From NCBI GenBank assembly GCA_965202585.1, contig OZ241826.1:85808001-85872000 (forward strand): 64,000 nt of DNA. Reading direction: 5' to 3'. Below, in pieces: positions 793-60,451 of the stretch. A model generated the notes under the pieces. It had not been told where the DNA came from. It ran no database searches and worked only from the letters and a program-made list of their open reading frames with translations. The translations under genes were made by a program, and so were the position numbers. Source of the DNA: Thalia democratica (Eukaryota). Numbering within the stretch: the first letter of the stretch is position 1; each line of letters starts with the position of its first letter.

Positions 793-3291
793 CTCAGTTT
801 TATTTTTAGTTTCTGTCAGTTCATGGTCACATTTGCTTAATGACGTCATACTTTTTATTATACCCTTTTTTACGTTACAAATGTTTGATGACGTAACACT
901 TTCAATTTCCGCTCTACTATAAGAAGATCCCGCTTCAGAGTTTGTTTGATTTTCAGTTGAGGGAGTTTTATCTGATAAATATTGTGAAGTAATATAATTT
1001 GTTTAAAGAAAATTTTGCGTCAGTATCATATCACTTTTTATGATTCTGACTTTTATAATAAAGAATTTATTAATGAAAATATTGTTTTAAACTTTAAATG
1101 TGCAAAAAAGTTATTATAAACGTTTCAAGTAAAAAAATAATCCGTTCTTAAAATATCGAGCCGAATTCATACTGTTTACATAAGTTACTTTGTTCAAGTA
1201 TAAGTTTTAAAAGTTTGTTTAAAGTAAAGGTCGCATAACAAAAAGTTAATAGTAAGATATTAATTTTTTGAGCTGAATGCTTTTACTTGATAAGATAAGA
1301 ATACTTTAAAACAAGATTCAAGTTAAAACCGCAGTAAGCAATAAGTTAGTATTTAAAAACTTAATTGTTGTTAACTATAAGTATTAGTACAGTTATATTA
1401 ATTTTATTAGTGATTTAATTTTAGATATTATTAAGTATATACTTTGAAAATAAAAAAAATATTAAAATAAAAGAAAAAAACTTATTAATTTCACAACAAC
1501 CAACATTAAATAATTCGGTAAACAACAATTTTATATGTCAGAAAATATTATTTAGGTAAATTTTACTGTTTTATACAATTTGTTTTAAAAGTATTTGAAA
1601 CTTTCAACGGAAATACAAATATAAGTCATAAGCAAACACCTGGTCAAACTTTTTTTTGATAGGAAAGACAATTTAAAGCATCATTAACCACGTAATTTAC
1701 AAATAAAATGTGCACATGAGAGTTTCATCCAACTGTATAATTTTGAATTTTTGAACAAATTTTTGATTTGTTTTGTTTTTTAGAAATACAGTTTAATATC
1801 TTTAAAATAAACTTAAAGACTGATTTTTAATATTTTTGATACCACACCTACGATATAATGAAATAATACAATTTATTTTATTAGATTGTAAAATTTGTTC
1901 TCAATCACTTGATTTAAAGTTTTTAAAACCGTTGTATTATAATTATTATTAATTTGCATTAAAGAAATTTAAGTATATATGTTTTCTGCTTTTAGACAAA
2001 CTATATTTTATTTATAGCTTAACTGTTATTACTTGTATTTTGAAGTATTATAATGTTCTAAAACTAAAAAAAGTAGTTTTTTATGTAAGAAGCTCATTTA
2101 AAGTCTTTGTATTTGTTTTAAACTTTTACCGCTTAGTGCATACTTATTATCCTGTATACAAGGTAAAACATAGCTCTAAAATACATCTTTAATATCTAAA
2201 AATTTACGCAGAGTTTTAATATATTTATTATTAAAATCAAAAACTAAGTATAACTTCTTTCACTATAATTGGCATGAAATACTATATCTATCTGCTTCAA
2301 ACATTCTGAGCTTAAAAAAATTTAATAAAACGCACTTATTCAAAAGCAGTAAACCGACTTGAAGTGTCAGTAACGATAATATATTAAATAAACTGTCATT
2401 TTTGCTACAAACCAAAAAATTTTTGCAAAACTGAACGCATTGTATAGGGCGTCACTAAATTTATTTTATTGTCAAAATGTTTAAAAAGTACTTGTAAAAT
2501 TTCATAAACTATGTTCTCGAGCTTATTTTAAAGTTTTTCACAAAGTTTTATCAAGAGAATCTTTAAAAATATATTGAAGATTTTACTGCTTTGTTGTAGA
2601 AAGAGATTCACTACAATCTATAATAGTTTAAAAGTATTTGTTAACATTTAAAATGACTATTCCTTAATACAAAAGCTTTAATTTTAGTAGTTATGGCGAA
2701 ACTATTTTTTAAATTTAAGCAAACTTTCTTTCTTTGAGATATTATCTTAAAATATAATTTAATCAACCCGATAAAAAACTATTTCAAAATCACTGTTAAA
2801 TAAAGTTACACATACAATCTTAATCTGAAATTACAAGTTGTTTGGTTTTCAATAAAAATAACGATGATAATATGCTTATACAGCAAATTTATATAGTTTT
2901 AAAGTTAATTTAGGAAAAAACTTGACAATAAAGATACATATTTGATGAATAAGTTAATGTTTGTAAATCATTTACAAAATATAATTTAAACTAAAAGTAT
3001 ATAGTTACATAAAAAAATTGTTAATATAAAAATTTATTTATAGGTTGTAGTATAAAGCTAATTTTTTTTGTACATCAGGTCTTTAGTCGTAACGGGTTTA
3101 GCGATTTTCTTCTTTCATATAATAATCAATATTAATACAGCATGCTTAAAAAATCACTTACCTAATGATGAAGTCTCATTTAATTGTGACGTAAAATGAG
3201 GTAATTTATTGGATAGATGTGACGTCATAACACAAACACTTTGCATTAAATTTGGTGTTTGTTTCGTATGGTCTTGCTTAAATTTCGGCAT
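793..3291 (-). CDS. ZF-A: 5' part of a family member (exon 1 3291..3162, exon 2 971..793); the rest would lie left of the window
   Basis: Exon 1 reads MPKFKQDHTKQTPNLMQSVCVMTSHLSNKLPHFTSQLNETSSL+G (130 nt, as in paralogues) and ends at a GTAAGT donor. Exon 2 follows a TATCAG acceptor in matching phase and reads DKTPSTENQTNSEAGSSYSRAEIESVTSS...KTE, ending at GAG|GT. No stops or frameshifts. No recognisable exon 3 within the window, so functionality is unproven. Confidence 0.7.
1631..1700 (-). promoter_or_regulatory. Intron-1 element II (about 65 bp: GTGGTTAATGATGCTTTAAATTGTCTTTCC...CCAGGTGTTTGCT) in ZF-A
   Basis: Conserved in six places. Contains TAATGA, ATTGT and CAGGTG cores; no conserved acceptor or open frame. 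Confidence 0.55.
2516..2524 (-). promoter_or_regulatory. Intron-1 element I, partial copy (AAGCTCGAG) in ZF-A
   Basis: Same position in intron 1 as the five exact 14-mer copies; the 3' part has diverged. Confidence 0.45.
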
Positions 3292-4814: not shown

Positions 4815-4855
4815 AACGTAGACTAGCACCTCAGTGCTGTTTGTCATTTGTTACT
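4815..4855 (-). promoter_or_regulatory. Upstream conserved element with near-palindrome TAGCAC-CTCA-GTGCTG (ZF-A)
   Basis: About 40-bp block shared with 17762-17800 and 42455-42495, degenerate at 32201-32230; 1.2-1.5 kb upstream of each ATG. Confidence 0.5.
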
Positions 4856-7236
4856 ATTTATTTCTTGTTAGGCACATACAATGCTTACGTAAGAAAATAC
4901 TTCTTTATTCTGAAACATATCAACCCTTAAACAGTTTTTAATATACTTTACAACTTGTTCGTTTTAACTGTACATTATAACTGGTAAAAATTCTTTTACA
5001 ATTGATTAACTTATGTTGAAACAATTTAACACATCTCTAAAGTTAAGAAAAATAAACCTTTTTTTTTATAAATTATTAACTATAATCAAATTAATTTAGT
5101 ATTAATACTTTTATACATAAAAACTAAAACCAAAACATTTGATAACTTGTTATAAAAAATTTTACAAAATAATTTCAAATATATTAGAAATTTTTCTAAA
5201 CTAGAATTTTGAGCTTTCTAGATTCTTTTTGTCTAGATCTTTTAATACAAAGTACTAAAAGATTATAACCCTTTTTAAATCTAGCTTCCTTAGTAAATGT
5301 TTTCTTTTAAAGTCTTGTAAAAAATTAGTAGCGTTAGTGTTAATTAAAATTAAAGAAATTAAGAAAGTTAAAATTCACACAATACAGCAAATTCTTCTTA
5401 CAAAACAATATCGGTTTAAACTTTTTCCCTTGAAAAGCTGTAAAACTATAGTGAAAGATGCGTTTATTTTCCGCCTACTTATTTTATGCATACATTTCAG
5501 TTTTATATTTAAAATTTCTAAACAAACTTTATTTTTAGTTACTTTTAGCATTAAACTAGTCTTTATAAAAACATTTTATAGATATATATACATTTTTTAT
5601 GAAATAAAAATAAATTTTTTGAATAAATTTTCCTAAAGAAAAATTCAAAACCTACAAAACTTAGTAAAAAAAAGTGCCGTAAAGTTTACTTATATTTTAA
5701 AAAACATTAAGTTTACTTGAAAAAGATATACAGTGATAGAATGTAAAATAGATGAGTTATTATTTACTTTTGTTTATTATTATATTTTCTGCTTGTCAAA
5801 CATATCTGAACAAATACTAATAACAAATTGCTGAACTTGGAAGTTTTTTTTAATTCAAATGTTTTTTTGTTAAATAAACATACAGTTTGTAAATGTTAAA
5901 ATGTTGTAGAAAAACTCTATCATAAATTTTTTCTTTTGAACCTATGCTTTAAATACGTTTTTCAAATAAAATCTTAAAGAAAACTTTGAACTTCTGAAAA
6001 AATTATTCAAAATTAGACATATGTGATTCGAAATATTATAATAGTTAACTTTAGTTGAATTAAAATAAATAACAAGTAATACATAAAAACTTTAATAAAC
6101 CGCAGATTATATAAGTATCTATTTTTTAAATAATATACAATGATTATGCGAACGTTTTTGTTTAAACCCGTAAGTTGTACTAAGATTTTGCAGTCGTTCT
6201 CAAAACAAATGATTCTGTAATAAATCTTGTGACTTCTTACAAGGTTCTTAATTTTTACAGTTTTTCGTTTACTTACGAAAAAAATGTGTTAATTATACAA
6301 CTTTTAAATTTGTTGATAGACTTAATAAGAAGTTTTTTTTTTGTTGAACTTATGGTAGGTTTATATTTTAATTGCAAGTTTTGCTTATTAAACGTCAAAA
6401 AAGAAACAACTATATTTACAATTTAAAGGATTACATTAGTTATCAAATTAAACTATTATTAAAGTTATATATATATATATTATAAAAAAATTTATATTCA
6501 AACTAAATGAATTTTATTGTTTAAAATGTACTTAAACTTGTTCAATAAACTGTATTTATTTAATAATTTGCTTCATGTTTTCTGAAAAGCTGAGTAATCA
6601 AAATTGGCAACCATTTAACATAAAAAAAGATTCAAAATTAAAATTTTTGATTAGATCTTTATTTGAATAGATCTTTAGTTTGAAAGTATTGTGCTTTTAT
6701 CAGCTGTTTATAAGAATGCAATTAATCATCTAAATTATTTTCTTCTAGCTCCTATTAGATAATGCTTCAATTTCGTTCTTAATTGCATTTTGATTTATTT
6801 ATATACCATTTTTGAAACGTGTAAATAATTTTAAATCTTTTAGATTTAGAGTTTTGTTATTAGGGATAAAAAAATATTAAAAAATAGCTTATTGGTACAT
6901 ATTAACTTTTAAATAGAATATTTTAATCATAAAACTTTCACCAAATTTCAAAGGTTATTTTAAATTATTTTTTTCTTTTCCTTGTAAAATTGTATTTAGT
7001 TGTTTAAAGCTTTAACATCTGACAGCTCACAGTAATTTATTTTTAAACACAAATAACCAATGATTTGAAGAATTTAGCTTTAATAATACCGTCACCACGA
7101 AATTTCTATCCGTAATTTTTAAACTTATACTTTGTTTCATATTTAAAATAATTAATTTAATTCTTTATAAAATCTGATAAAATTCCTTTAACTTGTGTAC
7201 ACATAAAATTTTCTAACTATATACATGAGCCTATAC

Positions 7237-7313
7237 TTTATTAGCAACTATCAGTACTCACTTTTTATTTTTTTACAAAAAATAAAAAGTGAGTACTGAT
7301 AGTTGCTAATAAA
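7237..7313. repeat. Perfect 37-bp inverted repeat (hairpin/cruciform) with 3-nt loop
   Basis: 7237-7273 TTTATTAGCAACTATCAGTACTCACTTTTTATTTTTT is the exact reverse complement of 7277-7313; the loop is TAC. Confidence 0.95.
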
Positions 7314-7518
7314 TTTTTTGTAAAATAAATAAAAATTTATAGTTAATAAATCAAACAGAAAATTAAATAACTTGATTTAAATTTAATCAAAAACCACTTA
7401 AGCAATTAACACATTCTTCTCACAGCCTAAGAAATATTTGTAAACAAAAGCATCGTATAAAACGTCACAAGATTTTTTTGAGCGACATATTTGAGAAATT
7501 TTTTGTATTTAAGAATGC

Positions 7519-7532
7519 AAGCCCTCGAGCTT
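7519..7532 (-). promoter_or_regulatory. Intron-1 element I (AAGCTCGAGGGCTT) in psi1
   Basis: Exact 14-mer shared by five paralogous introns while the flanks diverge. Confidence 0.55.
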
Positions 7533-10500
7533 TATTAAGCCTTGACATACTAATAATAACTAAAAAATTCTCAATTTCTACGGTTTCATGTCAACTTACA
7601 ACTACTATGGTAAATTTGTGTAATGATGTATTTATGATAAGATTAATAACTTATGAGAAAAAAAAATTAAAACTACAATACATATTTTTAGAATGACTGG
7701 TTTTTTACAAGATAATTCAAGCTAAACTTAAATTTTTGTAATTTACAGTTTGTGCAAACTAATAAATCTAAAATTAGTTTATGAATGAAAAACAAAACGA
7801 CCATATTAAAAACATTTTTGTGTTACTAGGTTCGATATACACTTTTTTTGAAACAATTTGTAAACAAAACTTATTTTTAGTAGATAACACGTCGTTACTA
7901 CATATTTAACTTATTTTAAAGATTTATTGTTATCACATTATACCTATTGAAATCTATTTAATTTTAGTTTGTACCTTTTTACTATTTTCGGAGTAGTTTT
8001 ACGTTTAAAACGTCTAAGACTAGCAAAAGTTATTGACATACTTTTATTTTATCGTTTGATAACATAGTTAAAACTTGTTTTAACATATTTTATTTTTATA
8101 ATTTGTTTTTTGTATCAAAAAACACATAACAATAATTTTTTACGTTTAATAACTTCTTCTTTTATAGATATCAACAACTTAGTTATTATTTCCGTTGAGC
8201 TAACAAACACACTACATATTTTAAATTACTTCCTAAATAGTGATCCTATAGTAATACAAATTAAAACAATACTTTGCAATCGTTTTTCTACTGTGCACAA
8301 ATAGTTACAGAAAAACAGTGTATACACATAGTATTCTTTAATTTCCAATGAAATCATTATTGTATTTATTTGTGTTTAATAAATACTTCAGTCAGCTATC
8401 AAAATTTAACTAGAGCAAAAGTTTAATTTGTTAAAAAAAACATGTTTAAATTGCTATGTACGGTAAACTTGTTAATATATACACAACTGCTCAACCTGTA
8501 AATTTCAGAATTAGTTTTCAAATAAATTTACCTTTAACATAAAACTTTATCAACTACATCGATGTAAGTTTTTATACAACTTTATGAACTATAAATATAA
8601 AGTTTTGTTTCTTATTTACCATTTGATAAAGTCTTTTTCATTGGTGACGTAATAATGCAAATGTCTGTCTTATATTTAGATTTTGTTTATGGTGCTCCTG
8701 CTTATATCGCGGCATTTCTTATTAAAATTGGTAAAATTCTAGAACAACGTACTAATAACATTTAAGTTTTTTAGTTTTTTTTTACGGATTTTTACAAGAC
8801 AAAGTTATAAAAAAATTTAACAAATTAAAAACAAGTAAACTAGATTTTAACTTTACATATATAAAACTTATTAAATAGTTTTTTACTGTTTCGTAATCAA
8901 TAAACATAGTTAGAATTTAGTACAATATTTTTAGTATAAGTTGTTAGTAAAATGTTTTTAAACAGCACAAAACCAACTCTTTGACTTTTTGCATGCCTTG
9001 TACATTTATAATTTCTTTAAGACGGCGTTTCAAACGCATTTAAACTTTAATATATACAAATTTCAGGCTTAAGCTGATGAAGGACAGTAACTTAATTTTT
9101 GTTGTTTTTTAAACTGTAAATAGAAATTAATATGCATTTAAAACAAAAATTACAAAAGAATTTTATAAAGTACTAAGTTTAAAAATAATTCAAGTTGTAA
9201 TTCGTAACTTTATTGTTTAAAAGATTTGGTTCTTTAAATTTCAGAAACATTTTGTATAAAGTATTTTAATGTTAAATGAAAATCATATCGATAAAGGTTT
9301 ATTCAAAATAGTAGTTTTTAATGTTCCTTAGTCTCGTTTATCAAATTGGTTTTTTGAAGTATTAAGCAGATACAATTTAAAAACGCCCTTCGATTTGATT
9401 AATCTAACGATGATATAATTAGTATAGGAACTGTGCTATGGTTCTGATTTAAACTTGTTAATTTTAAAACGTTACATATGTTTTATAACTATTTATTTAT
9501 CACATGTTATCTAATGTATAAAATAATAGCGAAAAATATTAATAATTATCATTGTAGATTTTTTTTATAGGTTTACATGTAAATAATTTATCTTTTAACT
9601 CACTTTTAGAATTTTTGTTAAAACATCAAGATTTTAAAAACAAAACGTTTGACATTATTTTTATTATTTAGAAAATAGTTGAAGTTCATTAACGATAGTT
9701 ATATAAAAATAAAAATTATTATTCTAATAACTAATTTTGTACAAAAAAATGTTTTAGATAAAAAATTTTAGGTCGTATTTTAGAGTAAAAGCGTAAAATG
9801 TGAAATTTGTTTTATTTTAAAGCAAATATTTTTAAATTTAACCTTTTCATTAAATTTGGCACGTCCAAGTATTTATATTTAATACTGTCGAAGCAAACTT
9901 TTTAAATTTAATCCAAGTTTAAGTCAGTAGGGTGGGAAAGATTTAAGATAGATTTAAATTCGCTAAAACACTTATTCAAGTGAAAACAAAAATCAACCAG
10001 AACTTGTTACAATGTTTATACTTTAGATTATTGAAGCTTAACCAAATCAGGATGTTAAAAATACAATTGAAATACTTAGAACTTGACAACTGAATATGGG
10101 AAAATAAAATTGCAGAACTAATACGTTTGCTTCTATGGATTTTTATGAAATCCTTGGAATAAAAAGTATTTTATTTTTGGGTTTTAAACCACTATACATG
10201 CGAAATTTTGATTTAGAATTTTTATGCAAAAATAATCATTAAATACAATAAAATACAGTATTAAATATGTGCATAGGTTACTATACATATAGATTTTTTA
10301 TTATAGGCAAATGATTAAAGTCGTGTATTACAAGTAACAAAACTAGAAAAACTAAATTGCTTAAAAGTTATCATATAAAATTATTATTCTAAAAGTAACT
10401 TTTTTAAAGACTAATCTTAGTGCAAAGTTAAACCAAGTAGCTAACTTACTGATAATGACATAATTTATAAATATGAATATTAAGTTTATTTAAATGACAT

Positions 10501-11485
10501 TAGCTTAGCTTTCTTTTAATTTATACAGAAATAATTAAAATTTTGCTACAAAGTAAAGATCTGAATTACTCAGATGGCAGTTTTAATCTTTAAAAAAACG
10601 TTTCTACGCCATTTTGAAAAATTTAGTAGAAATAAAAACGTCATAAAACGTTTAAATTGTAATTTCAAAAATATTTTATTGTGATAGATTAAAATAAAAT
10701 TTAAATCAAAAAAAAGATGTGAACATGATAGTTTGTTTAGTCGTACTAAAACTTGATCACAAATACACTAAACATAATTTTCAATAACTAAAAATACGTT
10801 TATTTTAAAATTTAAATTCTAAATTAGCAAAGTAAACGCTTCCAAATATCAATAATCTAAACAAACTAAAGTTTAGAACAATTCTTTTTGAGGCTGTTCA
10901 TTATTACGGCTGTAGCCATAGTGTTTTAAGAGTAAATCAAAACTATTTCAAATAAATTAAGCATGTTTTTTAACTTATCAGCAAAGTTTGAAAGTTATTA
11001 ACCAGTAAAAGGTTTTTTTAAATTGACAGTAAACCTTGTTCTTATTCTTAAACAAATGTATAAAGTTTGTTTAAAAACGGTATTAATCAAATAAAGTTTT
11101 TTGATTTTTGTAATATTAAAATATCCGTAATAAAAAACACTTGAAATAAAGTATATTTTACATTTTAGGATAAAAAAAGTAAAAGACCAAAAAAGTTAAG
11201 CGTAATAAAATTAGTTGTTATTAGTAAAATTGTACTTTATATACCAAATAAATTTTAAACAATTAAATGCAAATATTAAAATATAAAAACTCCTTGTTAA
11301 AAAATAACTTAGTATAAAACTTATAGTAATAATACAGGTACATATATTTAAAACTTTGTAACTTGTATAAAAAATGTTTAACAATATTGAAAACAAAAGG
11401 TTAGTGTATTTTCTATTTACTTTATTAGCTGAAAAATGCTAGTAGAACATTATTACAAGAACAGTTTTTGATCTTTTTTTAAATG

Positions 11486-14400
11486 TTAGTAATTTTTTGT
11501 GACAAGGTCTTCATATGGACGGAATAAATTAACATGCTTTTCATAGTGTTTTCTAGTTTCTGTTGACAGATATTGCTGTTCGTTTGGAGACTTAACTTTT
11601 AGCTTTTGGTTAGTTTCCGTACCACAACTAAATTGCTGTTCAGTAACATCCGTTATTTTCGCGCTGTTCCTATTCTTTGTAACATCTTCATAACGCCTCT
11701 GCTTTGCAGGTGGAGTCATTTGATCGTAAGAAAACGTACTTTGTCCTGGGAAAATGTTACCTTGCGAACATTGTTGCATTAACGGGTTGAACTCGATTGA
11801 GGTGCTGTTAAGTCCAAAATTACGATTTAATGTTTCGAGATTGTAAAGGCTCTTTCTGATTGGACCACCAGTAATAACTTTTTTGCTCTGACTGGTTGCT
11901 GTCAGCATCGGAAAAGTTATTTGCTGATAATTGACAAAATTAGGAAGGCCACTAGAGGGCGTTGTTCGCTTCTTTGTCGTTGATTGGTCGTTAATTTTAT
12001 CATGTGTCTTCATATGGGACTTGAGGTTGTCCTTTCGGACGGAACTGTAGTCACAGTGGGGACATTTGTGGTCCTTTTTACCCAGATGAATGCGCATATG
12101 ACGATGAAAATGATATAGTCTGAAAAATTAACTTATCAAGTATTAAAATACAACGTTTTATTTTTTGTTAAAGTTCATAGTATTTTACTTAGTTTTTTAT
12201 ATGAATAAAAAAAACAATTTTTAAACAGTTAACCATGAATTACTACGATTAAGTATGTTTATAGTTAAAAGATTAAACAGTTTTTACCTTTTTATTCGTT
12301 TTTCACACAGTGGACACTTTATGTACATACTTTCGGGATCTCTGCCTCTCATTTCTTCTTTGACCTGATTAACTATCAATTCAGCCTGTTTTTCAGTAAC
12401 GATTATTTGATAATTTGTTGAAGATGTACTCCCCAGAGGTAAACTCGGATAACTCGACGGTTTGTAAGTTTTTGGTAGACTAATAGAAATTACATCTGAA
12501 GACTTGTTACTAATTGGAGTTCCCAAATTATTTGAATTTCTATCTGACGAACTAGTTTTATTTCTATTAGAGAAGTCTGCAGTCATAGCTTGTATGTGTT
12601 CGATTTCTTTTTTATTCTTCGTAGTTGGTGTAAATTTTGTACTTGTAGTTTTATTATGTTTATGATAAACTTTTTTTAATGAACTAAACAGTTCTTCCTG
12701 ACTAGACTTTTTGGGAATAGCTTTACCTCCAATGTTTGTAGTAGCATTACTTTTTGCGTTCATATTTGTCCCAAGTTTATGTTCAGATTGATAAAACCTG
12801 TTGTTTGTCTTGTTCCAAAGGTTAAACATGTTTTGGTTGCACTTAACATTCTGAAAGTTTTGTTGAGGTATTATATAGTCACTGAAATTTTGTTGACTAT
12901 GCATAAACCGTCTTTGTCTTAAGTTGTTTTGTGCCATCATGTATGCTGCATATATTAATTGTTGTCTTCTTTGATTATAGAAACTATTAAGATAAGCCCA
13001 TTTCAATTGTCTTTCGTACAAAGCTTGCATTCTTTCTAAACTGTTTGGTTCTTTGCTCATGTACAAAAACGGTTTAGCCAATGAAAACTGCTGTAATTCT
13101 TCTGTTCGCAAATAAAAATTGTATGTTTGTTGATAACTTTGTTGTTTTTGCTGTGTTTTTAGTAAGATTTTTCTTGCTTCATCTTTTGAAATATTTACGT
13201 GCTTCGTTGAAACAAATTTAGTTTGATCTGAAGTATAAAAAACCGCTAGTTTGTTGATATAATGTTTATTTTTTTACAGTATTTTGTACATTTTAACATG
13301 GGAAAAAGAAGACTCTTATAATTGCATTATAGAAAATAATAAAAACAACTTTTATTTTTTAGAATAATTAGTAACTTTAGTGAATTACTTAGGAACATAT
13401 TATATTGTATATTATATATTATATTATTTTTACTCTAACAAAATTATTAACGTAAGATAAACAAATTAAGACTTAAATATATTTATTTTATTGCTTGAAT
13501 TTATAAAAAAAAATTACAGCTAGAACATGTTTTAACTTTCTTTTTATTATTACACTGTAAACATTATCTTAAATGTAAAAATTAATTTAAAATTTAAAAA
13601 CAGTATCTTAACAGTATCTTCAGAGCTAAACTATTTCATTTAATTTTATATACAAATTACTGTACTCTAAAAAACAGAAATATTAAATGTTAACAAAAAT
13701 GTTAAGCGTTTATCTAACCTTGAAATTTGGGTGAAGCTTTTTTATCGTTGTCATTAATGATAGGTTTTTTCATCAGTTCTTTGTGTGTTAAGTTATTAAA
13801 GTTTAACTGTAAAACAAATTAAGTTTATTTTTTATTATTTAAGACCACTTGGTTTCTTAAATCATTAACAAACCTCTGCTACTGTTTAAGTTCTGCATTA
13901 AAATCACGTTTGCTTAAACTCTTAGAGTTACAATTAAAATTAAATTATTGTTTTTCTGAAATAAGAAAAACAACAAACCTTAGGTTCAATTTTAGTTTCG
14001 GTCTTTAATTGTTCCCGACTACATTTTGACGTCATTTCTATTTCCTTATTTGTGACGCAATTTTTTGATGACGTCACACTTTTGACTTCTGGCCTACTTA
14101 AAAAAGATCCCGTTTCAGAGATTTGATTTTCAGGTAAGGAAGTTTTATCTGAAAAACATTATGACGTAACTAATATATTTCGTTAAAATACTTCGTAAAA
14201 GTAATACATATTTTATTAAATATCGTCTAGTATATTAATTTGGTGTTTTCCAAATATTATTTTAAATGTCATTATTATCTTTAAAGTAGCCGAAGGTTTG
14301 ATTATAAACATTTCAAGTGGGATAAATACCCGTTCTTAAGATGTCGGGCCGAATGTTTACGTAAGTTTTTTTTTTTCTAATTCTCAAGTAAAATAGTGTA

Positions 14401-17761: not shown

Positions 17762-17800
17762 AAACGTAAACTAGCACCTCAGTGCTATTTGTCATTTATT
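17762..17800 (-). promoter_or_regulatory. Upstream conserved element with palindrome TAGCAC-CTCA-GTGCTA (ZF-B)
   Basis: Perfect 6-4-6 inverted repeat at 17772-17787 followed by TTTGTCATTT. Confidence 0.5.
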
Positions 17801-35296: not shown

Positions 35297-35357
35297 GTGG
35301 TTAATGATGCTTTAAATTATCTTTCCAAACAGAACATATTCTGACCAGGTGTTTGCT
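35297..35357 (+). promoter_or_regulatory. Orphan copy of intron element II with no recognisable exons nearby
   Basis: GTGGTTAATGATGCTTTAAATTATCTTTCC...GACCAGGTGTTTGCTA; a TTCCCACA lies at 35432. Confidence 0.5.
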
Positions 35358-42454: not shown

Positions 42455-42495
42455 TAAATGACAAATAACACTGAGGTGCTAGTTTACGTTTTGTT
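42455..42495 (+). promoter_or_regulatory. Upstream conserved element TAACAC-TGAG-GTGCTA (ZF-D)
   Basis: Reverse-complement homologue of 17762-17800. Confidence 0.5.
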
Positions 42496-48195: not shown

Positions 48196-51100
48196 TAAAA
48201 AATCAAAAAATGTTCTTGTAAAAATATTCTAATAACATATTTCGGTTTATAAAATAAACAGTACTACTCTTTTGTTTTCAATATCGTTATTACAGCTTAT
48301 ATACAAATTATAAAGTTTTCACTAAATGCACCTCTTAAGATTTTTATCATATATTTTATACTTAATTTTGTTTTTCAATTAATAGTTTTTATATTTGAGT
48401 AAAGGCATTTAATTATCTAAAATTTATTTGGTCTATAAAGTACATTGTTATTAATAGCAACAAATTTTATTACGCTTAACTTTTTTATTGTATTTTCACT
48501 TGTATCAAGCTTATATGTAATATATATTCTATTTTAAGTGTATTTAAATACGGTTAATTTAATATCGTAAAAAGCAAAAAACGAGTTTTGATTAATAATA
48601 GTTTTAAATAAACTTTATACATTTGCTTAAGAATAAGTACAAAGGTTTACTGTTAATTCAAAAACCCTTTACTGGTTAATAATTTTCAAATTCTGCTGAT
48701 AATCTAAAAAACATGCAAAATTTATTAAAAATACTTTTGATTTACTCTTAAAACACTATGATTACAGTCGTAGGAATGAACAGCCTAAAATAGAATTATT
48801 CTACAATTAGCTTGTATTTTTATCGATATTTGGTAGGGTTTACTTTGCTAGCTTAGAATTAAACTTTAAAAATATAGATTTTTAGCTACTTAAAACTATG
48901 TTTAATTTTTATTTATCAAACTTTAGTACGACTAAACAAATCATTAACTACACATTTTGTTCACAACATTGTTTTTGATTTACGTTTTATTCTTATAATT
49001 TTAGTAAAACAGTTTTCAAACTACAACTAAAATGTTTTATAATGTTTTTCGTGCTACTAGTATTTTTTCAAAATGGCGTAGCAACGTTTTTTATAAGGAT
49101 TAAAACTGCAATCTGTTTAATTCAGTTCTTTACTTTGTAGCAAAATTTTAATTATTTCTGTAAAAACTGAATGAAAGCTAAGTTAATGTCATTTGAATAA
49201 ATATGATACTTATATTCATAATGTATGTCATTATCAGTAAGTTAGCTACTTGGTTTACACTAAGATACGTCTTTGAAAATTATTACTTTTAAAGCATTAA
49301 TGTTATATAACAATTGATGAGAAGTTTATTTATTCTAGTCTTTTTACTTGAATTACTCAACATTAATCATTTGCCTGAAATTAAAAAAATATATGTATAG
49401 TAACTTATGCACAACTTTAATATTTTGTATTTATTGTATCTAATGTTTTTTTGCAAATTTTTATACATTTAGATTTTTTTTTATGTAAAAATACACGTAC
49501 TTTGTTCGTATCAATTTTTTTTTTTGTATGATAACTAACTTAAAGTTATTTATCTTGCTTAGCCTTTTGTGCTGTAAGAGTTGTATAAAGAGTTATTTTT
49601 TTATAACCATCATCACTACTAGAAGTTAACTTTAAAATTTGACAAACTGAATGCACAAAATACTGCCTTTAGTTAACAGTTTTTTAAAATTGATTATCAA
49701 AGCAATACAAGTTTTAATTTTTGTTTTTATTTTTTTTGTTAAGATAATTTTAGTTATTAAATTGAAGCTAAATGATAAAAAATATATACATCTTTACTGC
49801 TTTAAACTGTTTTAGTAAAAGGGTTCATTTATTACTTTAACAATTATTTTCATATTTTAAAACTTTTTTTTATCAACATGTAATATGTTACAAAAAAAAA
49901 CAACTATTTTGCTTTAAGATAATTTATATAAACTTTTACAAACAGTTTACAATTAACAACTATAACTCGTATCAGTACTACATAAAAGTTTTTGAAAAAA
50001 CTTAAAACATAAATTTGATATAAACTGATGTTGTGTTAGTGGCGAATTTTATATTGATTCTGCTTTCTTGAACTCATAGTTTTATATCTTCCTAAAAAGC
50101 AGTTATCTTAAACATATTCATTTTTGAAGTAATAAATTTTTAACATTTATAAATTCCCTGTGGTTTTATTAATCATTACGGTCTTATTATGTATTTAAAT
50201 CGGTTATAGTTTGTTTATTAAGCCATTAGCGTAACCATTTCTAAATTTATAATTAAAACATAAAAAAAATCGATTACTTAAGAATTTTTTACATTTATCC
50301 ACAATTATTAAAATGGTCAAATAATTCTAAAATTATAAAATATTACCTTAATATTATTTTATTTCACTATTCTTTAAGTCAATTAAAGAAACTATTTTTG
50401 TAATACAAGATGCAAGTTCTCATTTTAAACTTCTGTTTTCTTCTTAAAATTTCTACAGTTTTCTGACACATATTTTTCAATATTGTATGATAAGATTACA
50501 CAAAACTTCATAGTTTTAATCTTGTCGAAGTTAAATAACTCAAAAACGCACTTTTGCGAAAAGTACCGACAATAATTTTTCAATAATGTAAAACTAGAAC
50601 GACATGTGCTCGTATTTAAAATTTTATTGCAAGTTTCAAATTGAAATGTTTAACTTAAACTAGTCTTTTTTTTTGTGCTAGTTATGTAAAATACATTAAA
50701 CTATTTTTCGTTTATTCTGTAACTACTTTAGCTTTCCAACAACTGAAACTTTATAAACAGATTATAAAAAAGTAATCATCTATTTATAATTAAAATGTTA
50801 CAAAACAGCGAAAATTTACAAAAAATGTTTAAAAAGTTTTTTATGATTTCAAGCTTTGTATTGAAAATGTAATTAAAATTTTCGTGTGAATAGTGGTATA
50901 CAGACCTAAAAGAGAGTACTTTTTATTGCTAGGATATAATTAAAATCCATAGAAGTAAAAGTATTAGTTCTGCAACTTTATTTTCCCATATGAATTGTCA
51001 AGTTCTAAGTGTTTCAATTTTATGTTTAAACCCTGATTTGTCTAAGCTTCGACTATCTAAAATATCAACATTGTATAAAGTTTTAGTTTGAATTTTGTTA

Positions 51101-54100
51101 AAATTATGCTTTTTTTTCACTTGACTAATTTTTTCTTTTAGTTTTAAATCTTTTTAATTTTTCGCCATCCTACAGACTTAAACTTGGATTATTTTTAAAC
51201 AATTTGCTTCGACAGTATTAAAATTAACACTTGAACGTGACAAATTAAATGAAAACTTTACATTTAAAAATATGAGGTTTAAAATAATTTTCACGTTTTA
51301 CGCTTTTACCCTAAAAAATGACCTATAATACTTTAACTAAAATAGTTTTTTTATCAAAAATTATTTATTAAAATAATAAATTTGATTTTTGTATAACTAC
51401 CTTTAACAAACTAGAAATATTTTCTGAATGATAATAAATAATGTCAAACGTTATGTGTTTTCTATCTAGGTGTTTTGACAAAAATTCTAAAAGTAAGTGA
51501 AAAGATAAAATATTTACATATATATCTATAAAACATTTTTATAAAAGTAATTGTTTAGACTTTTTGCTTTTATTTTATACACTAGAAGACTTAATATAAA
51601 TAAGTAGTAATAAAATATTTAATTTTACAAATTTAAGTCAGAATCATAGCACAAACTATTTGTAATATGTGTAAAAAATCTCAAGAAACAGTTGCTATAC
51701 TTATTATAACCACGTTAGATTAATCAAATCGTAGGGCGTTTTTAAATTGTATCTACTTAATACTTTAAAGTAATAATATGATAAACGAGAATAAGAAACA
51801 TTAAAAACTACTATTTCAAACAAACCTTGATCGATGTGATTTTCATTTACCTCTAAAATACTTTATAAAAGTATCTCTTAATTTTTTTGAACTAAAGTTT
51901 TTAAACAATAAAGTTACGGGTTTCAACTTAAACTATTTTTAAACCAAGTATTTTCTAGAACTTTTATAAGATATTTGTCTTCATTGCATAAAAATTTGTC
52001 GTTGCAGTTTTAAAAACAATAACATAAATTTAATTACTGTCCTTCATCAGCTTTAGATAAAATTTTTATTAAAGTTAAAGTTTAAATGCGTTTGAAACGC
52101 CGTCTTTTAGAAGTTATAAATGTAAAAGGCATGCAAAAAATCAAAGGGTTGGTTTTGTGCTGTTTAAAACATTTTACTAAGATCTTATATCAAAAAATGC
52201 TTATAACTAAACTAAGTTGTAATTGAATTCTACTAAATTCTAAATAAATTTATTGAACACAAAAAGTAAACAATTCTTTGACAAGTTTTATTTAAGTATA
52301 GTTAAAATTAAGTTTATATGTGTTTTATAAAAGTTTTATACTTGCGTTTTTTAAGTAGAAAAAACATAATATATTAGTTTGTCAAATCTTAACCTTAAAA
52401 AGCTTTTTAACTAATCAAACAATTACACTTTCACACTAAATTTTAAGATTAAAATAATACTAAGTTATCGTCGCTACAAATGTTTACAATAGTCGTAAAT
52501 TAAAATACAAATTTTTTTAAGTACTATTTTTGTGTTTTTCTACGTAAAGTTAAGATAAAAAACTCGTTTTTTCTATTAAAGTTGTTAAACAAAATTTTAT
52601 TGCGAGCAGTTTAAATATAATATAAAACATTATTTGATTAACTTTAGAAACTGATGCAAAAACTTATAAATTTAGACAAAACATATGGGATATTAAAAAT
52701 TATTTGTAAAATTTCTCATTTGTGTAAGCGAGAAATTAGATTGCTTTTTTTTTAACCATTTCTCGTAACATAAAAAATGATTTCATACATATCACCTAAA
52801 CTTGTAAAGAAAACTTTAGATGGAATATTGTTTTTTTAAAAAAAAATATTTTTGAATGAAGTTATACTTAATTATAATAGTTTTAGTATATCAAAGTTTA
52901 TTATTTATTTAACAAAATTCAAAAGTACACTTAAACATGATACCAAAAAATAATGCTTTTTGCAACATTGAGTATTAAAGGTTTTTTTAATTTTAGTATA
53001 ATATTTTAATTAGTGTTCAAAGTTGTGAAAAAAAGTTAGTAATTTTTCTATAAAACTTTATCTTGTAAAAAAAATTATAAAAATAATAAAATAAAAGAAA
53101 TAATATAATGATTTTTTTTAGATTATTATCAATTTTATTAATAACTGCCGAGATTTATGCAGGAGCACCATAAAAAACTACCAAGTACGATGCAGAAATT
53201 TTTTATTCTTACGTCACGAATGAAAAATACTTTATTATCAGGTAAATAAGAAACTAAAGTTTGAATTTATAGTTTATAATATTTTATAAAATAGCTTTAC
53301 ATATAAACTTTTTAAATAAATCAATATAATTTCTTATGTTAGAATTGAAATACTTGAAATTAGTTCTGAATTAAAACAGTATGCGCAGTTGTGTATATAT
53401 AAATATATTTAATTACACAGATATTAATTTTTTTTTTTAATAAAATTTACAACTATGTAATACAAATAAGCACAAATATGATTTTTTTCTTAGTTATATA
53501 AAATAATGTAATCATTTTTGTTTCCAGTAACTAGTTGTACAGAGTTAAAAATGATAGTTAACATTCTTGTAATTTGTATTACTATAGTATCACTATCAAG
53601 AGAGTAATGTAAAATATATAGTGTGTACGTTAACTAAAAGGAAATTATAAATAACTGATTGATATCTACAAAGGAAGTAATACAAAGCCTATAATTTTGT
53701 TCGACCAACTAAATACATTTTGATATAAAAAACAAAGTATAAATAAATAAAAATACATTAAAATAAAATTTTACTGTAAATAACAAATGCTAGAAGGAAA
53801 GTATTTTGATAATAAGAATCACAGGTTTTTTTTTAAACTACTCCAAAAATAGTGAAAAGTAAAAAAAATTCGTTTTTGCAATCTAAAATTAAATGGATTT
53901 CAAAACAAATAATCTGATAACAATGAATCTTTGAAATAAGTTAAATGTTTGTAACGACGTGATATTTAATAAAAATAATAAATAAGTATGTATCATGCCT
54001 AGTAACACAAAAAAAATTCTAAAACTGGTCGATGTTTTTATCATTCAATAGTTATTTTGAATTTATTAGTTTGCATAAACTGTAAAAGTATGACATGTAT

Positions 54101-54284
54101 AATTTAAGTTGAATAAACTTTTAATAAACTAAATAATTTGTATATAACACTTTGTTTTTTTTCTCTCAACAGTTATTAAACTATCATAAATATATCAGCG
54201 CACAAATTTACCATATTTGGTGTTAATCGTCATAAAACAACAGAAATCGAGATTTAATTTTTACGTTTATGTGAAAGTTTGATA

Positions 54285-54298
54285 AAGCTCGAGGGCTT
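54285..54298 (+). promoter_or_regulatory. Intron-1 element I (AAGCTCGAGGGCTT) in psi2
   Basis: Exact 14-mer. Confidence 0.55.
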
Positions 54299-57200
54299 GC
54301 ATTGTTAAGCACACAAAAATTCTCTAAAATGACGATAAATAAATCTTGTGACATTTAAAAGGTGCTTTTTGTTTACTATTATTGCTTAGGCTGTGAGAAG
54401 AATGTGTAATTGCTATAGTGGTTTTAAACTAGATGTAAAATTTTTTTAACAATACATCTTTAGTTTTTCAACAAATAATTATAAGTAACTACTATTAGTT
54501 GCCACAAATTTATAGACTTAAGTATGTAGTTAAAAGATTTTATGTTAACACAAATTTAAGAAAGAATCAATTTATAAAAAAAAATAATTTTAATAAACAT
54601 GAAAAGAAGGTAAAGTTTCAATATTACAAAAAGAAGTTTCAAGGTGAGAATATATTTAACGCAAAGTTCTTTAAATAAGCGTTTATATTTTTCTCAAAAG
54701 TAAGTACTGTAATCTAACAAATGTTAAAGTTTTAAGAACCAAAAACAATATAATATGAAAATAGTTTTTATTCTAGTTTAAAATATTTTACTTAGCCTTT
54801 GAAACTTGATAAAAGTTTTACGACTAAAATATATTTGTTAAAGAGCCAGTAAAAAATTTTTAAATATCTTTTTAATTACTAATAAGAAAAATCAAAACTT
54901 TAACCTTAATAAGTTATTTACATGTTTTTAAAATGGTATATATCAATCAAAATGCAATTAAGAACGAAATTAAAGCAGCAACTAGTAGAAGCTAGTGGCA
55001 GGTATTTTAGATGATTAATCACATTCTTTTAAACATCTGATAAAAAATACGGTGCTTTTAAACTATAGATCTACTCAACTACAGATCTAAACAAAAGTTG
55101 AATATTATAAACTGACTCTTTTAATGTTACATGGTTACCAACTTTCATTAGTTAACCTTTAGGAAAAAACATGAAGCAAACAATTAAATAAATACTAAAT
55201 ATTGAACAAGTTTAAGTACACTTTTAAACAATAAAATTCCTAGTGTTTTAACATAAAAATTCAAAAAAGTATATAACTTTTTTAAATAATTTAATTTATA
55301 AAAAAGTAGTTTAATTTAAGAAAAAGCTATTTTTGTTATACTTATAAGTTTAAATTTATTAATTCTAAAAAAATCTTAACCAAAATCGCTTTAAATCTTT
55401 TTTTTTTGAAATTTAGGTGACTAAGTTGGTTTAGTTTTCGTAATATTTAAGTCTGTTTTGTAAATAAAATGTAATGTAATATAATAATGACTTAGTTTGA
55501 ATTAGTTGAATTTTATAGTTTTTTAACTGATATAAGTGTGAAATTCAAGTATATTATTATACTATCTAAAACTAACACTGTGGTTATTACTAATTAAGTA
55601 AACATTGAACGAATTCTAGTTCGGTTATTAAATAAAAATTTTAAACTTTTAAAAATTTTAAAAATCTAATTTTAATAACTTTACCTATATTAATATTCTT
55701 TACAAATTATAACTAGCCCTAAAAACATACTAAAAAATCCAATAACTGACATTAAATTCAGATTTTATTAAACTAGTTTTATTATGACGGCTTTATATAT
55801 AAAGACTTTAACGTGAAAATTTTAGTTAAAATGTGTTTGATTATTTTAATTCTTATAGGTATAATTCTATTGTATAAACTCTTTGTAAACAACAACTATT
55901 TTGATTTTTTAGAAAGTTTAAAGTTAATTGTACAGATTATAATTTAACAAAGTTAACGATCAATAATTTCCTTATAAATTAAGATTTATAAGAAATAGTT
56001 CGTTTATATTTTATTTACTAAATTTATTCCTTAAACTATGCTTTAATCAATTCAAAATGTAATAGATTTTTTTAATAAATTTAGTAAATGTTTACTTAAT
56101 TTGATAAAAACAGATAAGTTTACAAAACTTATCACACAAAAAACTGATGAAAAAACCAATAATTAATAATTACGATTAAAATGAAATACAAGAAGTTCAA
56201 GGTTAGATAAATTATAGATGTTTGTAAATTTAAATGATTAAAGTTTGTTTTCTCTGTTTTTTTTAAACATCTTTAAGTAAAATAAATAAAATTTATCTAA
56301 AAGAGTATATAGTTTTTAACTTCTTTTTATATTAAAAACTATCAAAAAATTTTAACTGTAATGACTAGGCTTTTCAGAAATTTTTTTTTTTAGATAAACT
56401 ATCTTGTTTTAATTAGTCTATGTATTACATGATAAATCATGCAACATTAAAGTACTATACTCAACAGTATTTTAGTAAAATTAATTTAGTTTACTTAAAC
56501 TGTTCTAACAGTAGCATTACGATTTTGGTTTTATCTTTGTTATTGTGATATTGATGTGTTAAGTATATACATTGATGAAGTAGATAGATTAAGAATAAAC
56601 ACAAATTATTCTATTTAGAACATAAAGAATTTGTTTCGACAAAGATTATAACCACTCGAAAATATAATGCAACAAAATTCTAAAAAACTAAAAACACAGT
56701 ATCACCATCAGAGTTTTCAACAAACAGACGAATATAATTTGCCAACCAGTCAATTACAGCAGTTTTCATTGGCTAATACTTTATCATCAATTTATAAGCA
56801 AACAAACAATGTAGCAAGAATGCAAGCTTCGTACGAAAATCAAATTAAATGGGCTTGTTTTAATAATTTCTATTATCAAAAAAGACAACAACTGATATAT
56901 GCATCATACATAATGGCACAAAATAACATAAAGCAAGGTAGATTGTTACAAAGTAATCACAATTTTAACAGCTGTTTTATGTCATAACAAAAGTTAAGTA
57001 GTGTGAATCAAAACTTGTCTAATATTGAAAACCAGAGATACAACAGCTATTTTCAACCTAAAGTTTAAAATATTAGAACTTATAAATTCCGTAGTAATGC
57101 CACAACAAAGATTAAAAATGATGTTTTAACAAAAGTTCTTATAATGCAAATCTAAATAATTTAATACCGACGAGTCAAGAAAAACAGAAAAATCCGCTAA

Positions 57201-57350
57201 ATACAACTAAAAATGCTCTAGGAAATACTGCAACTAAAAATAATAAAAAAGGTATTGAAAATATAAAAGGTATAATTGCTGATTTCTCTAAGAAAAAGAA
57301 AAAAGTTAGTTAAGTAACTACACAGAAAAAAGTAAAAAAAAGGTTTTCCA

Positions 57351-57937
57351 ATGGCTTCAAAGTCTTCTGACGTGATTTTAATTAATCCACTAGAAACTTA
57401 CAAATCAGCGAATTATCGAAATTTATCTCCTGGAACTACATCTTTAAAAAACAACCAGATAATCGTCACTGAAAAACAAGCAGAAATGATAGTTAATCAG
57501 GTCAAGGAAGAAATGAGAGGCAGAAATCCTGAAAACAAGTACATAAAATGTTCATTATGTAAAAAAAGTATGAAAAGGTATAAAAATGTATATTTTTACT
57601 ATGACACACTATTTTAAATACTTACTTTTGCATAGTATTGTATCATTTTGACATCAAATTTCTAAACTAACACAAAAAAATTTTAGAAATTGCACACAAT
57701 ACAAATAAAGATAAAAAATCGTTTTATTTAGCTTATTAAATTATAGATGTAAACTTATTTCTATATATTTACGAAGCTTAAATTTTTAGATTATACAATT
57801 TTCATCGTCATATGCGCATTCATCTGGGTCAAAAAGATCACAAATGTCCCCACTGTGACCACAGTTCCGTCAGAAAGGACAATCTCAAGTCCCATATGAA
57901 GACCCATGACAAAAACAACCACCAATCAACAGCATAG
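57351..57937 (+). CDS. Candidate 124-aa fingers-only protein within psi2; join(57351..57577,57790..57937)
   Basis: Uninterrupted spliced frame MASKSSDVIL...QIIVTEKQAEMIVNQVKEEMRGRNPENKYIKCSLCKKSMKR|LYNFHRHMRIHLGQKDHKCPHCDHSSVRKDNLKSHMKTHDKNNHQSTA*. Intact GT-AG intron and all eight zinc ligands retained. Expression is unknown. Confidence 0.35.
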
Positions 57938-60451
57938 TAGCGAACAAGACTCACTCATGACTTTCCTACGTTTGATAATTTTAGACAATTTAATGCAGCA
58001 AGATTTAAAAGTAGCGATAAAAATAGTAACAATCTTTACAATGACGTTAAACTTCGAAAAAGTTTGCAACACAACTACGCCCCTAACATATTTTACCCAC
58101 CAATCAACTCTAGTTTCCAGTACATTCCACACCATACACCCTTCCTTACGAACCACTAGCTCCCGTTGTAAAGCGAAGAACGGTTCGAAAAACAAACAGA
58201 CAATAAAAGTTCCGCTAAAGTAACTGATACTACCGAACAACAAACAAGAATGGAACAAAATGTAAAAGATAAGTCTATGAATACACAGCAAAAAGTATCA
58301 ACAGCTATTGAGAAAATCAGTAAAAAGCATTGAGATTTGCCGTTATAAATGTATTGTCACAAAAAACTATTAAATAAGAACAAAAAACGGTTAATCTCGA
58401 AACTGTTTTGCTCGTAATATTTTCTAATCAGTTTTCATATGAAATTTTCAATCTTTTTGTTAGTGTAGTTTGATAAAACTGTAAATTTTAAAACAAAATT
58501 GATATATTCTACGGTTTTAAACTTCATTAATGCATAATTATCTGTAGTTTCAATTATAATATATATGTTTTATATTTAGTAAATATAAGACTTAAAAGAA
58601 TTTTGCATCGATTTTGCACTCATTACGTTTTTTTATTGAAATTAAGTATGTTAGTTTCGAAATATTTTAAAGCTAAGGTGCATAAAATTCTTTTTTAATT
58701 TTATCAACTATCTTTTTACTTTATTTTTGAAAGTTGTTAAACAAATTTAAACAACTATGTCTAGAATACATATTGATACAAGCTTTTAAATATTTTTTAA
58801 TTTTTTATGTAATATGCTCAAATCACCAAAATATTTTAATTTATTTAATTTTTTTTATGAGTTAACGTAAAACGCATTTCATTTTAACACTTAAGAATAT
58901 TTTACTTATGAAAATAGCGTCTCTACGCTCTTTACAAAAGTTTTTAAAGTCAGTTTTATATCAATTAGTTTTATTTGTCTGATTTGATTAACATTTGTTA
59001 AAATTTGATAAACTATAATAATAAAAAGTAAGAGTAGCAAAAACATCAACAATTTCAATATAAACTTCTAACTTGTTTTTAACATAATATTTAAAAAGTG
59101 AGGTGTGAAGTTTAAATAGATTAAAGTAATTTAACCGTTCTTTTTGTACTTGGATAAAAAGTTCAAAATTTTGACGTATAAATAAACCATGTACTTATAA
59201 AAAGTTTAAAACAAGAGACAGTATAAATAATTTTTGTGTTTACATTATCCAAATTTATGCTTATACTAAATTAATTTTTATACACGGAAGTTTAATGTAT
59301 TTTTAATTATTAAAGATCATTTCACAATTTATGTTTGATTACATTATGATTTACAATAAAAGAGTTAGAACTTTTAAATTTTATTAATTTTACAATCATA
59401 ACTTAGTTTGTATGATACTATTGCGTTTAAACAATATTAAAGTTTTTTTAAATTTGTGAAAAAGGTTTACTCAAAATGTGCCAGGATTAAATTACGATAG
59501 AAATAATATCATTTTTTTAAACGGCAAAATTCTTGAAAAACAAGATGTAGATACCAATTTGAACGATTCAAGCTGCTTTTTTGTTCAAAACTTTCAACAA
59601 AAGTATAATATAACAATTTAAAAACTCATATCTAATTTAATACTTTTTTACTAAAAACTTATATATCTAATTAATATATGTATTTATTGAGAAATTACTA
59701 ATAAAAATAAATAATATACTAGTTAAGAAAATTTGCTCAACAAAAGACAGTTCAATTATAAGCTTCTTATTACGCTAATGTTTCTTTTTTAATTTAGTTT
59801 TAATTAGTTGTACATGTCTTTTATCTAACTTGCTTTTTTTATTGATAAAGAAAAGTAAAACAGTTTTAGCATTTAAAAATAAAATAATATTAAACATCAA
59901 AATTAATCTAATTTAGTATTTTTTTTCCGAATAAGATAAAAAATAATACTTTGTATTGTAGTTTTACAAGTTTTCTTATTTAGAAAATCTGTTTGTTCAC
60001 TTACTAGGATATATGTAAATTTGGTTTTGGTTTTAGTTCAAGACATTTAAAATAAAATATGATTTACCTGTATCACAGATAAAAACATTAATTTGGAATA
60101 TTGATTAATTATTAAATTTAACCATTTTAAACTTACATTTAAGACAAGTTATAAAAAAATGTAACTCACTTATCTTATTAACAATTTTTACCACCCATGT
60201 TGATTTTTATTACAAACATAAAAATTGCAAACATTAAAAAACTTTAATTACAGTATGAAATTTCCTAACTAAAATTTTAAAATTATTTAAATATTTATTT
60301 AACTTAAAGAGTTTGCTTTAAGTTATGTGAGAAAAAATGAAGTTTTTATTAGATGTGGGAATTAAACTGACCTATAAAATTTTACAGGTCAACATAGCTA
60401 CTTTTATTTTCAAAGTTTTAACAGTTAAAATTGAAACATAGTAGTATTTTA

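Follow-up and report, generated by a model that had tools for sequence, protein, structure and literature searches.

Most known lineage-specific zinc-finger arrays evolve by altering what their fingers read, and multicopy transcription factor arrays under concerted evolution are found in mammals (Zscan4, Dux/DUX4) and in ascidians (Zic-r.b/ZicL). Here we describe an array of C2H2 zinc-finger genes in Thalia democratica (assembly GCA_965202585.1), analyzed from a window of 64,000 nucleotides on contig OZ241826.1 (contig C1 below; C1:85808001-85872000) that is ~23% GC and contains few long open reading frames (ORFs). The array follows the reverse mode, as one DNA-binding module stays constant across ~40 copies, dead ones included, within genes that otherwise diverged long ago. 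The explanation that best fits the evidence, and which we consider probable, is that of a ~1-Mb array of four-exon genes whose finger-encoding block is kept near-identical by selection together with gene conversion, such that the copies would share a single target.

This large two-finger C2H2 array is real, lineage-specific, unannotated and undescribed, and a literature search for a salp zinc-finger array returned nothing relevant. A search of the whole assembly gave 49 matches that resolve into ~42 loci, which are spread in both orientations and 10-40 kb apart over 1.06 Mb (C1:85.50-86.56 Mb), with one locus on contig C172. Large and finger exons are uninterrupted and full-length at 19 loci, and locus L033 also appears intact (~20 in all), while the other loci carry stops, frameshifts or truncations or are fragments, leaving about half of the loci broken. 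The clustering and the extent of decay agree with the birth-and-death evolution that a preliminary description of the window, made from its sequence alone, had proposed; the array would have grown through segmental duplication, inverted duplication included, with copies decaying afterwards. Read depth over the finger block was, as a rough figure, ~100x that of unique contigs, which is compatible with the array copy number in a heterozygous diploid.

An array gene most likely comprises four in-phase exons, to judge from its conserved junctions (marked here by a slash). Exon 1, which ends in phase 0, and exon 2 accompany nearly every copy genome-wide in 5' alignments and profile searches. Exon 2 is exactly 88 nt long and gapless in all 19 intact copies, with a YAG acceptor and an AAG/GT donor in phase 1, and the large exon opens at a conserved TTYAG/AT acceptor, also in phase 1. 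In each copy examined the large exon ends in AAA AG/gt and the next exon begins with ag/A TTR TAY CAY, and finger 1 is interrupted in every copy examined by this phase-2 GT-AG intron (CPLCEKRIKR/LYHFHRHMRIH). Both the GT and the AG of the finger intron are kept at 29 of the 29 loci at which a script could place the two sites, pseudogenes included. Joining exon 1, exon 2, the large exon and the finger exon gave an in-frame, stop-free reading in c1, c2 and c3, the three intact copies of the window, with 613, 565 and 622 codons, respectively, when counted from where the exon-1 frame opens; counted from the first ATG in frame, the lengths are ~572, ~537 and ~581 residues. Across nine sister pairs we counted one indel event in exon 1 and none in exon 2, versus ~14 per kb in the adjoining introns, and 12 of the 14 indels in the large exon were multiples of three. 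Downstream of the ATG of ATGACGTCA, changes in exon 1 fall 13/8/28 on codon positions 1/2/3, a coding signature that is absent upstream of this ATG (39/33/26).

The preliminary description was correct that the window contains three full genes whose upstream exons join in phase to the finger exons, with the left copies (c1 and c2) on the minus strand and the right ones (c3 and the decayed c4) on the plus strand. It overestimated the number of exons, as only two upstream exons are conserved and neither the interval from exon 1 to exon 2 nor that from exon 2 to the large exon contains a further segment conserved across subfamilies; the chain therefore has four exons and not five. Instead of the six claimed copies of exon 1, nhmmer and tblastn searches recovered four (789-983, 13973-14160, 26546-26674 and 45746-45933), nhmmer --max and relaxed tblastn added none in the window, c4 being preceded by no more than a possible decayed trace, and a promoter-proximal motif described below likewise occurs exactly four times. 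A claimed edge gene, c0, does have its exon 1 in the window (789-983), but its body lies outside and is a pseudogene, and the two broken copies reduce to c4 plus an orphan upstream element at 35275-35400.

Alignment of the 19 intact copies revealed several conserved pieces in the encoded protein: LQQF..ANP, SS.VISI.LP, a ~35-residue segment (RMQALYESQMK.A.LNNFYNQRRQQLMYAAYM.AQN) and a 96-residue block, NQIIVTEKQAEMIVNQVKEEMRGRDPENMYIKCPLCEKRIKRLYHFHRHMRIHLGKKDHKCPHCDYSSVRKDNLKSHMKTHDKNNDQSTTRKRTTP, composed of a short helix, two C2H2 fingers and a basic tail. After splicing, both fingers have C-X2-C-X12-H-X3-H spacing, finger 2 reading CPHCDYSSVRKDNLKSHMKTH. Pfam scored finger 2 at or near its cut-offs and missed finger 1 in the genomic ORFs because the intron splits it; C2H2 was the sole Pfam domain in the array exons and in outside relatives, with no N-terminal effector of the KRAB, ZAD, SCAN or FiNZ type. 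All array copies have LGKKDH as the linker that joins the fingers (for example at 47590-47610, plus strand), in which the conserved threonine and proline of canonical TGEKP-type linkers are lost. AlphaFold modelled the large exon with one long helix (residues 24-71; predicted local distance difference test score, pLDDT, ~70-79) and a short one immediately preceding finger 1, and the rest of the exon, which was of low confidence, is probably disordered. The finger fold was assessed on P0022, an intronless orthologue whose aligned part shares 68-80% identity with the array copies; residues 165-275 were predicted by AlphaFold to form two beta-hairpin-plus-helix units (pLDDT ~88-92), which is the beta-beta-alpha fold. 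A complex prediction for a homodimer of the long helix scored 0.01, which counts neither for nor against dimerisation. Near the C-terminus the array proteins carry a motif of the W/F-R/K-P-W/Y kind: LFRPY lies 3-12 residues from the end in 16 of the 19 intact copies, and the other three have one-residue variants (LFCPY in c3, LYRPY in L035 and L036). We take LFRPY to resemble the Groucho/TLE-recruiting motifs WRPW, WRPY and FKPY, although to our knowledge FRPY is not a documented variant of these. The product would thus be a protein of ~540-580 residues with a short N-terminus, the long helix, a disordered middle, the block and a disordered tail ending in LFRPY.

Trees of the regions flanking the block on its N-terminal and C-terminal sides agree with each other and define four subfamilies separated by long branches: A (c3, L041, c1 and L044), B (c2 and ten others), C (L038 and L040) and D (L016 and L019). 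Ratios of nonsynonymous to synonymous divergence (dN/dS, or omega) were calculated by the Nei-Gojobori method, with flank values pooled over nine independent sister pairs. This revealed an omega of 0.008-0.026 for the fingers, 0.07-0.14 for the block and 0.13-0.38 for the helix segment, so the genes are constrained as coding sequence, the fingers extremely so. Helix positions -1, 2, 3 and 6, by our own assignment, are invariant in the intact copies, apart from an L-to-F change at position +4 of finger 2 in c3. Long finger arrays with diversifying contacts were not found in these proteins, which have two fingers only. The frozen fingers, and their opposition to the KRAB pattern, are as the preliminary description had stated. 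Its broader picture, in which everything outside the fingers diverges, needs qualification: the freezing extends to the block, and the long N-terminal helix, VISI.LP and the C-terminal LFRPY are kept in all subfamilies.

The flanks gave an omega of 0.57 on the N-terminal side (95% bootstrap interval 0.48-0.69) and 0.68 in the tail (0.54-0.88), versus 0.02-0.1 for the block. One alternative is adaptive diversification of the effector regions, a neofunctionalisation outside the fingers by which each paralogue would exert a different output at the same DNA target, and the preliminary description had likewise proposed that the cluster diversifies regulatory output. Identical fingers joined to non-finger regions only 40-50% identical between subfamilies would suit this idea, as would the persistence of four old, distinct subfamilies with intact members and the omega of ~1.0-1.16 reached by some windows of the middle region. 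We nevertheless regard it as unlikely, since the divergent regions are predicted to be disordered, the intervals of the pooled ratios lie below 1 and the candidate effector motifs (the long helix, VISI.LP and LFRPY) are common to all subfamilies. In a sliding window, omega ran at ~0.84-1.16 across the disordered middle and was nowhere clearly above 1. Because of this and of the predicted disorder, we read the flank pattern (omega ~0.6-1.0) as drift under weak constraint; adaptive diversification, for which there was no sign short of a formal site test, is not supported.

Selection alone does not account for the freezing of the fingers, as concerted evolution confined to the ~290-nt block operates as well. 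Synonymous divergence (dS) in the block is ~0.3-0.45 for any pair of copies, versus flank values of 0.2 within subfamily B and more than 1.2 between A and B, such that the block is more different than the flanks in sister copies and far less different in distant ones. When trees were built separately for the block and for the flanks, much as the preliminary description had suggested, the block tree was discordant with the concordant flank trees, having short branches only and mixing the subfamilies. The consistency index of block sites is 0.37 on either flank tree and 0.44 on the block's own tree, with reciprocal values of 0.60-0.66 for the flanks. GC content at third codon positions (GC3) is 0.40-0.43 in the block versus 0.26-0.29 in the flanks, as expected under GC-biased conversion, and in a sliding window the region of raised synonymous difference per site (pS) extends approximately from SNVISI.LP to TTRKRTTP. 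Six pseudogenes in an advanced state of decay (L020, L022, c0/L025, c4, L028 and L032) have flanks whose identity to any intact copy is only 70-80%. Five of these match intact copies, usually from a different subfamily, at 91-98% identity in each half of the block, and in L028 the finger-exon half reaches 97.5% and the large-exon half 84%. As selection cannot act on pseudogenes, it cannot explain this identity. Discordant genealogy, similarity independent of subfamily and conversion into pseudogenes were seen in the 96-codon block only. Taken together, the uniform dS, the scrambled tree, the raised GC3 and the near-identical pseudogene blocks argue for conversion restricted to the block in addition to selection.

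Could the same pattern arise by purifying selection with no conversion at all, through a low saturation ceiling set by AT-biased codons or through a mutation hotspot? The ~60-75% of third positions that are A or T would place the ceiling of pS at ~0.3-0.4, and ~0.26-0.34 is what was observed everywhere. Flanks within subfamily B, however, are unsaturated (dS 0.2) and yet the block is at the full 0.3-0.4; a hotspot would wreck the pseudogene blocks, which beside their eroded flanks have instead stayed 92-98% identical to those of intact copies from other subfamilies; and the block is heavily homoplastic even on its own tree. We consider an origin of this kind highly improbable. Instead, the 96-codon, ~290-nt block would be kept near-identical by purifying selection that acts very strongly at the protein level and by a second process, short-tract conversion among all subfamilies, pseudogenes included, that is probably GC-biased.

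Overwriting of the block from one or a few functional donors, such as related genes on contigs C6 or C10, would also homogenise an array that was itself largely non-functional. Half of the loci are broken, the pseudogenes keep near-perfect blocks and a search for RNA runs with the locus gave none, all of which such overwriting would accommodate. Against this, ~20 copies keep open frames of ~480-500 codons in 23% GC sequence, the flanks of nine independent pairs have an omega significantly lower than 1, and the large-exon indels are predominantly multiples of three. The array block also differs consistently from both proposed donors (LGKKDH...DYSS in the array, LGKKNH...EYKS in the C6 gene and TGEKTH...NYKS in the C10 gene), and the C6 and C10 genes are for this reason not the donors. 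A non-functional array is in our view improbable, and we retain functional genes whose block is maintained by both selection and conversion.

Under this explanation, all copies would bind one DNA motif, and the benefit of carrying many of them would lie in dosage and/or partitioned expression and not in new targets. The long helix and the C-terminal LFRPY, which is WRPY/FKPY-like, would provide shared effector contacts, possibly with a corepressor of the Groucho/TLE type. A more speculative and rather doubtful extension is an ampliconic system of one motif and many proteins, in which dozens of paralogues, truncated ones included, would carry a DNA-binding module that conversion keeps interchangeable and would either cooperate or compete at shared genomic sites, possibly in the germline or in the very early embryo. 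Multicopy regulators and palindromic amplicons are typical of the germline and the very early embryo. If this were true, GC-biased conversion restricted to the block would keep the whole set on one target and leave the effector parts free.

Several observations weigh against parts of this account. No RNA run containing the locus was found, and two runs that matched c3 proved to be short-read genomic DNA. A genomic-DNA contig of 287 bases spans the finger intron unspliced, and apparent joints fell away from the GT-AG ends. The close database relatives of the array genes are likewise all unspliced ORFs on marine metagenome DNA contigs. We therefore infer both splicing and expression, the former from the GT-AG sites, the matching phases and the lack of indels specific to the exons. 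Exon 2 shows no third-position excess (40/29/33 changes) and is uninformative in this regard. The start codon is uncertain: of the 19 intact copies, 15 have the exon-1 ATG and 17 have an in-frame ATG in exon 2, and the four A-type copies, which include c1 and c3, show GTG where the others have the exon-1 ATG. A flank omega of 0.6-1 means that parts of the protein are barely constrained. Finally, DNA binding, the common DNA motif and the Groucho-type reading of LFRPY are hypotheses and serve as leads, and in vertebrate NET proteins Groucho binding does not depend on FKPY, for which a role is reported in insects (PMC5144077).

Relatives of the array are few, as a HMMER search against 1.8 billion representatives returned 17 proteins only. 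Phmmer, HMMER and alignment identified a family core, DPENMYI.CP.C.K.IKRLYHF.RHMRIH..K.H.CP.C.Y.SVRKDNLKSH.KTH, which the array shares with Oikopleura dioica and with many unnamed proteins of marine eukaryotes, and 34 columns are invariant in an alignment of 19 proteins. The sole family hit assigned to a named eukaryote is the uncharacterised O. dioica protein OKI2018_I69 chr1.g386 (P0025/P0026), and array-like ORFs are present in Tara Oceans metagenome contigs. As the preliminary description had anticipated, no gene name can be assigned: the HMMER and phmmer relatives are unnamed, and neighbours in the protein atlas are generic C2H2 proteins only (BCL11A, ZBTB and Pegasus). No N-terminal homology with the Oikopleura proteins was established, and only the finger region aligns to the related genes on contigs C6 and C2. 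A likeness between the serine-rich exon-1 peptide and Oikopleura proteins was rejected as low-complexity.

Members of the chr1.g386/C10 family have the same DNA-binding core as the array and in most cases a helix before finger 1 as in the array, P0022 being without it, and one outside member, P0011, ends in IFRPY, comparable to the array LFRPY. Within the T. democratica genome, the other members are single genes at separate loci, in contrast to the ~42 loci of the array. The C10 gene, the canonical orthologue (C10:17723696-17723926, minus strand), shares 99% identity with P0022 across the 77 residues of the finger region and is intronless in finger 1, and a paralogue on contig C7 (C7:45454609-45454803, plus strand) is likewise uninterrupted there, whereas the single genes on C6 (C6:15735910-15736463) and C2 (C2:27551140-27552097) have the phase-2 finger-1 intron in common with the array. 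The difference looks like intron gain or retrogene-type loss within the family. The linker is LGKK in the array and TGEK or SGEK in other family members, with the exception of the C6 gene (LGKKNH), which is the closest relative of the array. As the C6 gene shares both the split finger and the LGKK linker, sequence comparison indicates that the array is a derived amplification of a C6-like gene.

Four loci with both a large exon and a finger exon were found in the window by tblastn with two large ORF types, namely the intact c1, c2 and c3 and the decayed c4, and c0 contributes exon 1 alone. On the minus strand, c1 comprises exon 1 (13979-14158, the open-frame part up to the donor AAG/gtttgt), the 88-nt exon 2 identified by profile search and alignment (13719-13806), the large exon (12288-13227; 940 nt, with the phase-1 acceptor and the AG/gt end within finger 1) and the finger exon (11486-12119), which was placed by tblastn and splice sites and encodes the second half of finger 1, finger 2, the tail and the stop codon. 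Also on the minus strand, c2 comprises exon 1 (26535-26672, the open-frame part, with the candidate start ATGACGTCA and the donor GAG/gtaatt), exon 2 (25867-25954; 88 nt), the large exon (24553-25459; 907 nt) and the finger exon (23423-23987). On the plus strand, c3 has the open-frame part of exon 1 at 45748-45927, exon 2 at 46100-46187 (88 nt), the large exon at 46423-47383 (961 nt) and the finger exon at 47556-48195. The c4 pseudogene (56110-58339, plus strand) retains relics of exon 2 (56110-56208), of the large exon (56667-57617, with 10 stops) and of the finger exon (57791-58339, with 5 stops), its block being ~92% identical to intact copies. Within c4, a helix-plus-half-finger ORF at 57351-57937 (plus strand) remains open and the finger block is near-intact; conversion into the pseudogene explains this ORF, and a new micro-protein is not needed. 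The edge copy c0 (L025; exon 1 at 789-983, minus strand, by nhmmer) continues to the left of the window at C1:85806000-85807800 as a pseudogene with stops and a frameshift.

An inverted segmental duplication relates a left arm at 6440-19474, which contains c1, to a right arm at 40863-55301, which contains c3 and aligns in the reverse direction (55301-40863) at 70-81% identity. The arms are ~13-14 kb long and are separated by a 21-kb spacer that holds c2, a palindrome-like arrangement as in ampliconic gene regions. Outside the gene units, a ~180-nt inverted repeat (40012-40194, plus strand, versus 62690-62872, minus strand; 67-75% identical when translated) is possibly dispersed repetitive sequence. 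Neither an Rfam nor a tRNA scan gave a hit in the window.

Upstream of the genes, a TATA-like motif, CACTTGAAATGTTTATAA, lies ~135-190 nt before exon 1 in all subfamilies (~135-140 nt in c1-c3). Motif search found it exactly four times in the window, on the minus strand at 1114-1131 (c0), 14302-14319 (c1) and 26830-26847 (c2) and on the plus strand at 45596-45613 (c3). A far-upstream core was recognised by sequence conservation at 1536-1750 (c0), 14614-14954 (c1) and 27886-27981 (c2) on the minus strand and at 45030-45250 (c3) on the plus strand; as a candidate coding exon it was rejected, having stops in all frames. A further such core at 35275-35400 (plus strand), with no matches to gene exons nearby or downstream, is probably the relic of a lost copy. 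The cluster-specific core of c3 contains a ~85-nt kernel with CAGGTG. This non-coding 85-nt kernel (ATTACGTGGTTAATGATGCTTTAAATTGTCTTTCC...GACCAGGTGYTTGC...TTTCCG) lies 0.6-1.3 kb upstream of exon 1, is ~84% identical even across subfamilies and is array-specific, all of the 40 matches listed being on C1:85.50-86.56 Mb, C172 or C1600; its E-box CAGGTG can alternatively be read as a splice donor. The window also contains ten perfect palindromic cAMP response element (CRE) octamers, TGACGTCA, versus 0.24 expected (at 841, 3220, 14027, 14069, 16366, 26580, 27995, 30711, 45830 and 45872). Six of the ten fall within exon 1 and overlap its candidate start codon (A-TGACGTCA reads Met-Thr-Ser); the remaining four are found past the upstream cores of c0, c1 and c2, at distances of 14 nt to ~4 kb. 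These octamers may be CREB/ATF sites or plain coding sequence.

Our analysis delimits an unnamed two-finger family that is conserved and carries a putative corepressor motif, and it supplies exact predicted junctions; the place of the array among known systems can be stated in three respects. Like KRAB, ZAD, SCAN and FiNZ zinc-finger clusters, the array is a lineage-specific set of tandem and inverted C2H2 genes shaped by duplication and decay, but it differs from them in having two fingers only, no N-terminal effector domain recognised by Pfam and invariant DNA contacts. Its proteins resemble Hairy/Hes, Runx, Brinker and insect NET proteins, with their WRPW, WRPY or FKPY motifs, in carrying an aromatic-R/K-P-aromatic motif near the C-terminus. 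With Zscan4, Dux/DUX4 and Zic-r.b/ZicL it would share the combination of many copies and one specificity homogenised by conversion or unequal exchange, whereas in the Thalia array homogenisation is limited to a ~290-nt, intron-split block and the rest of the genes falls into four old subfamilies.

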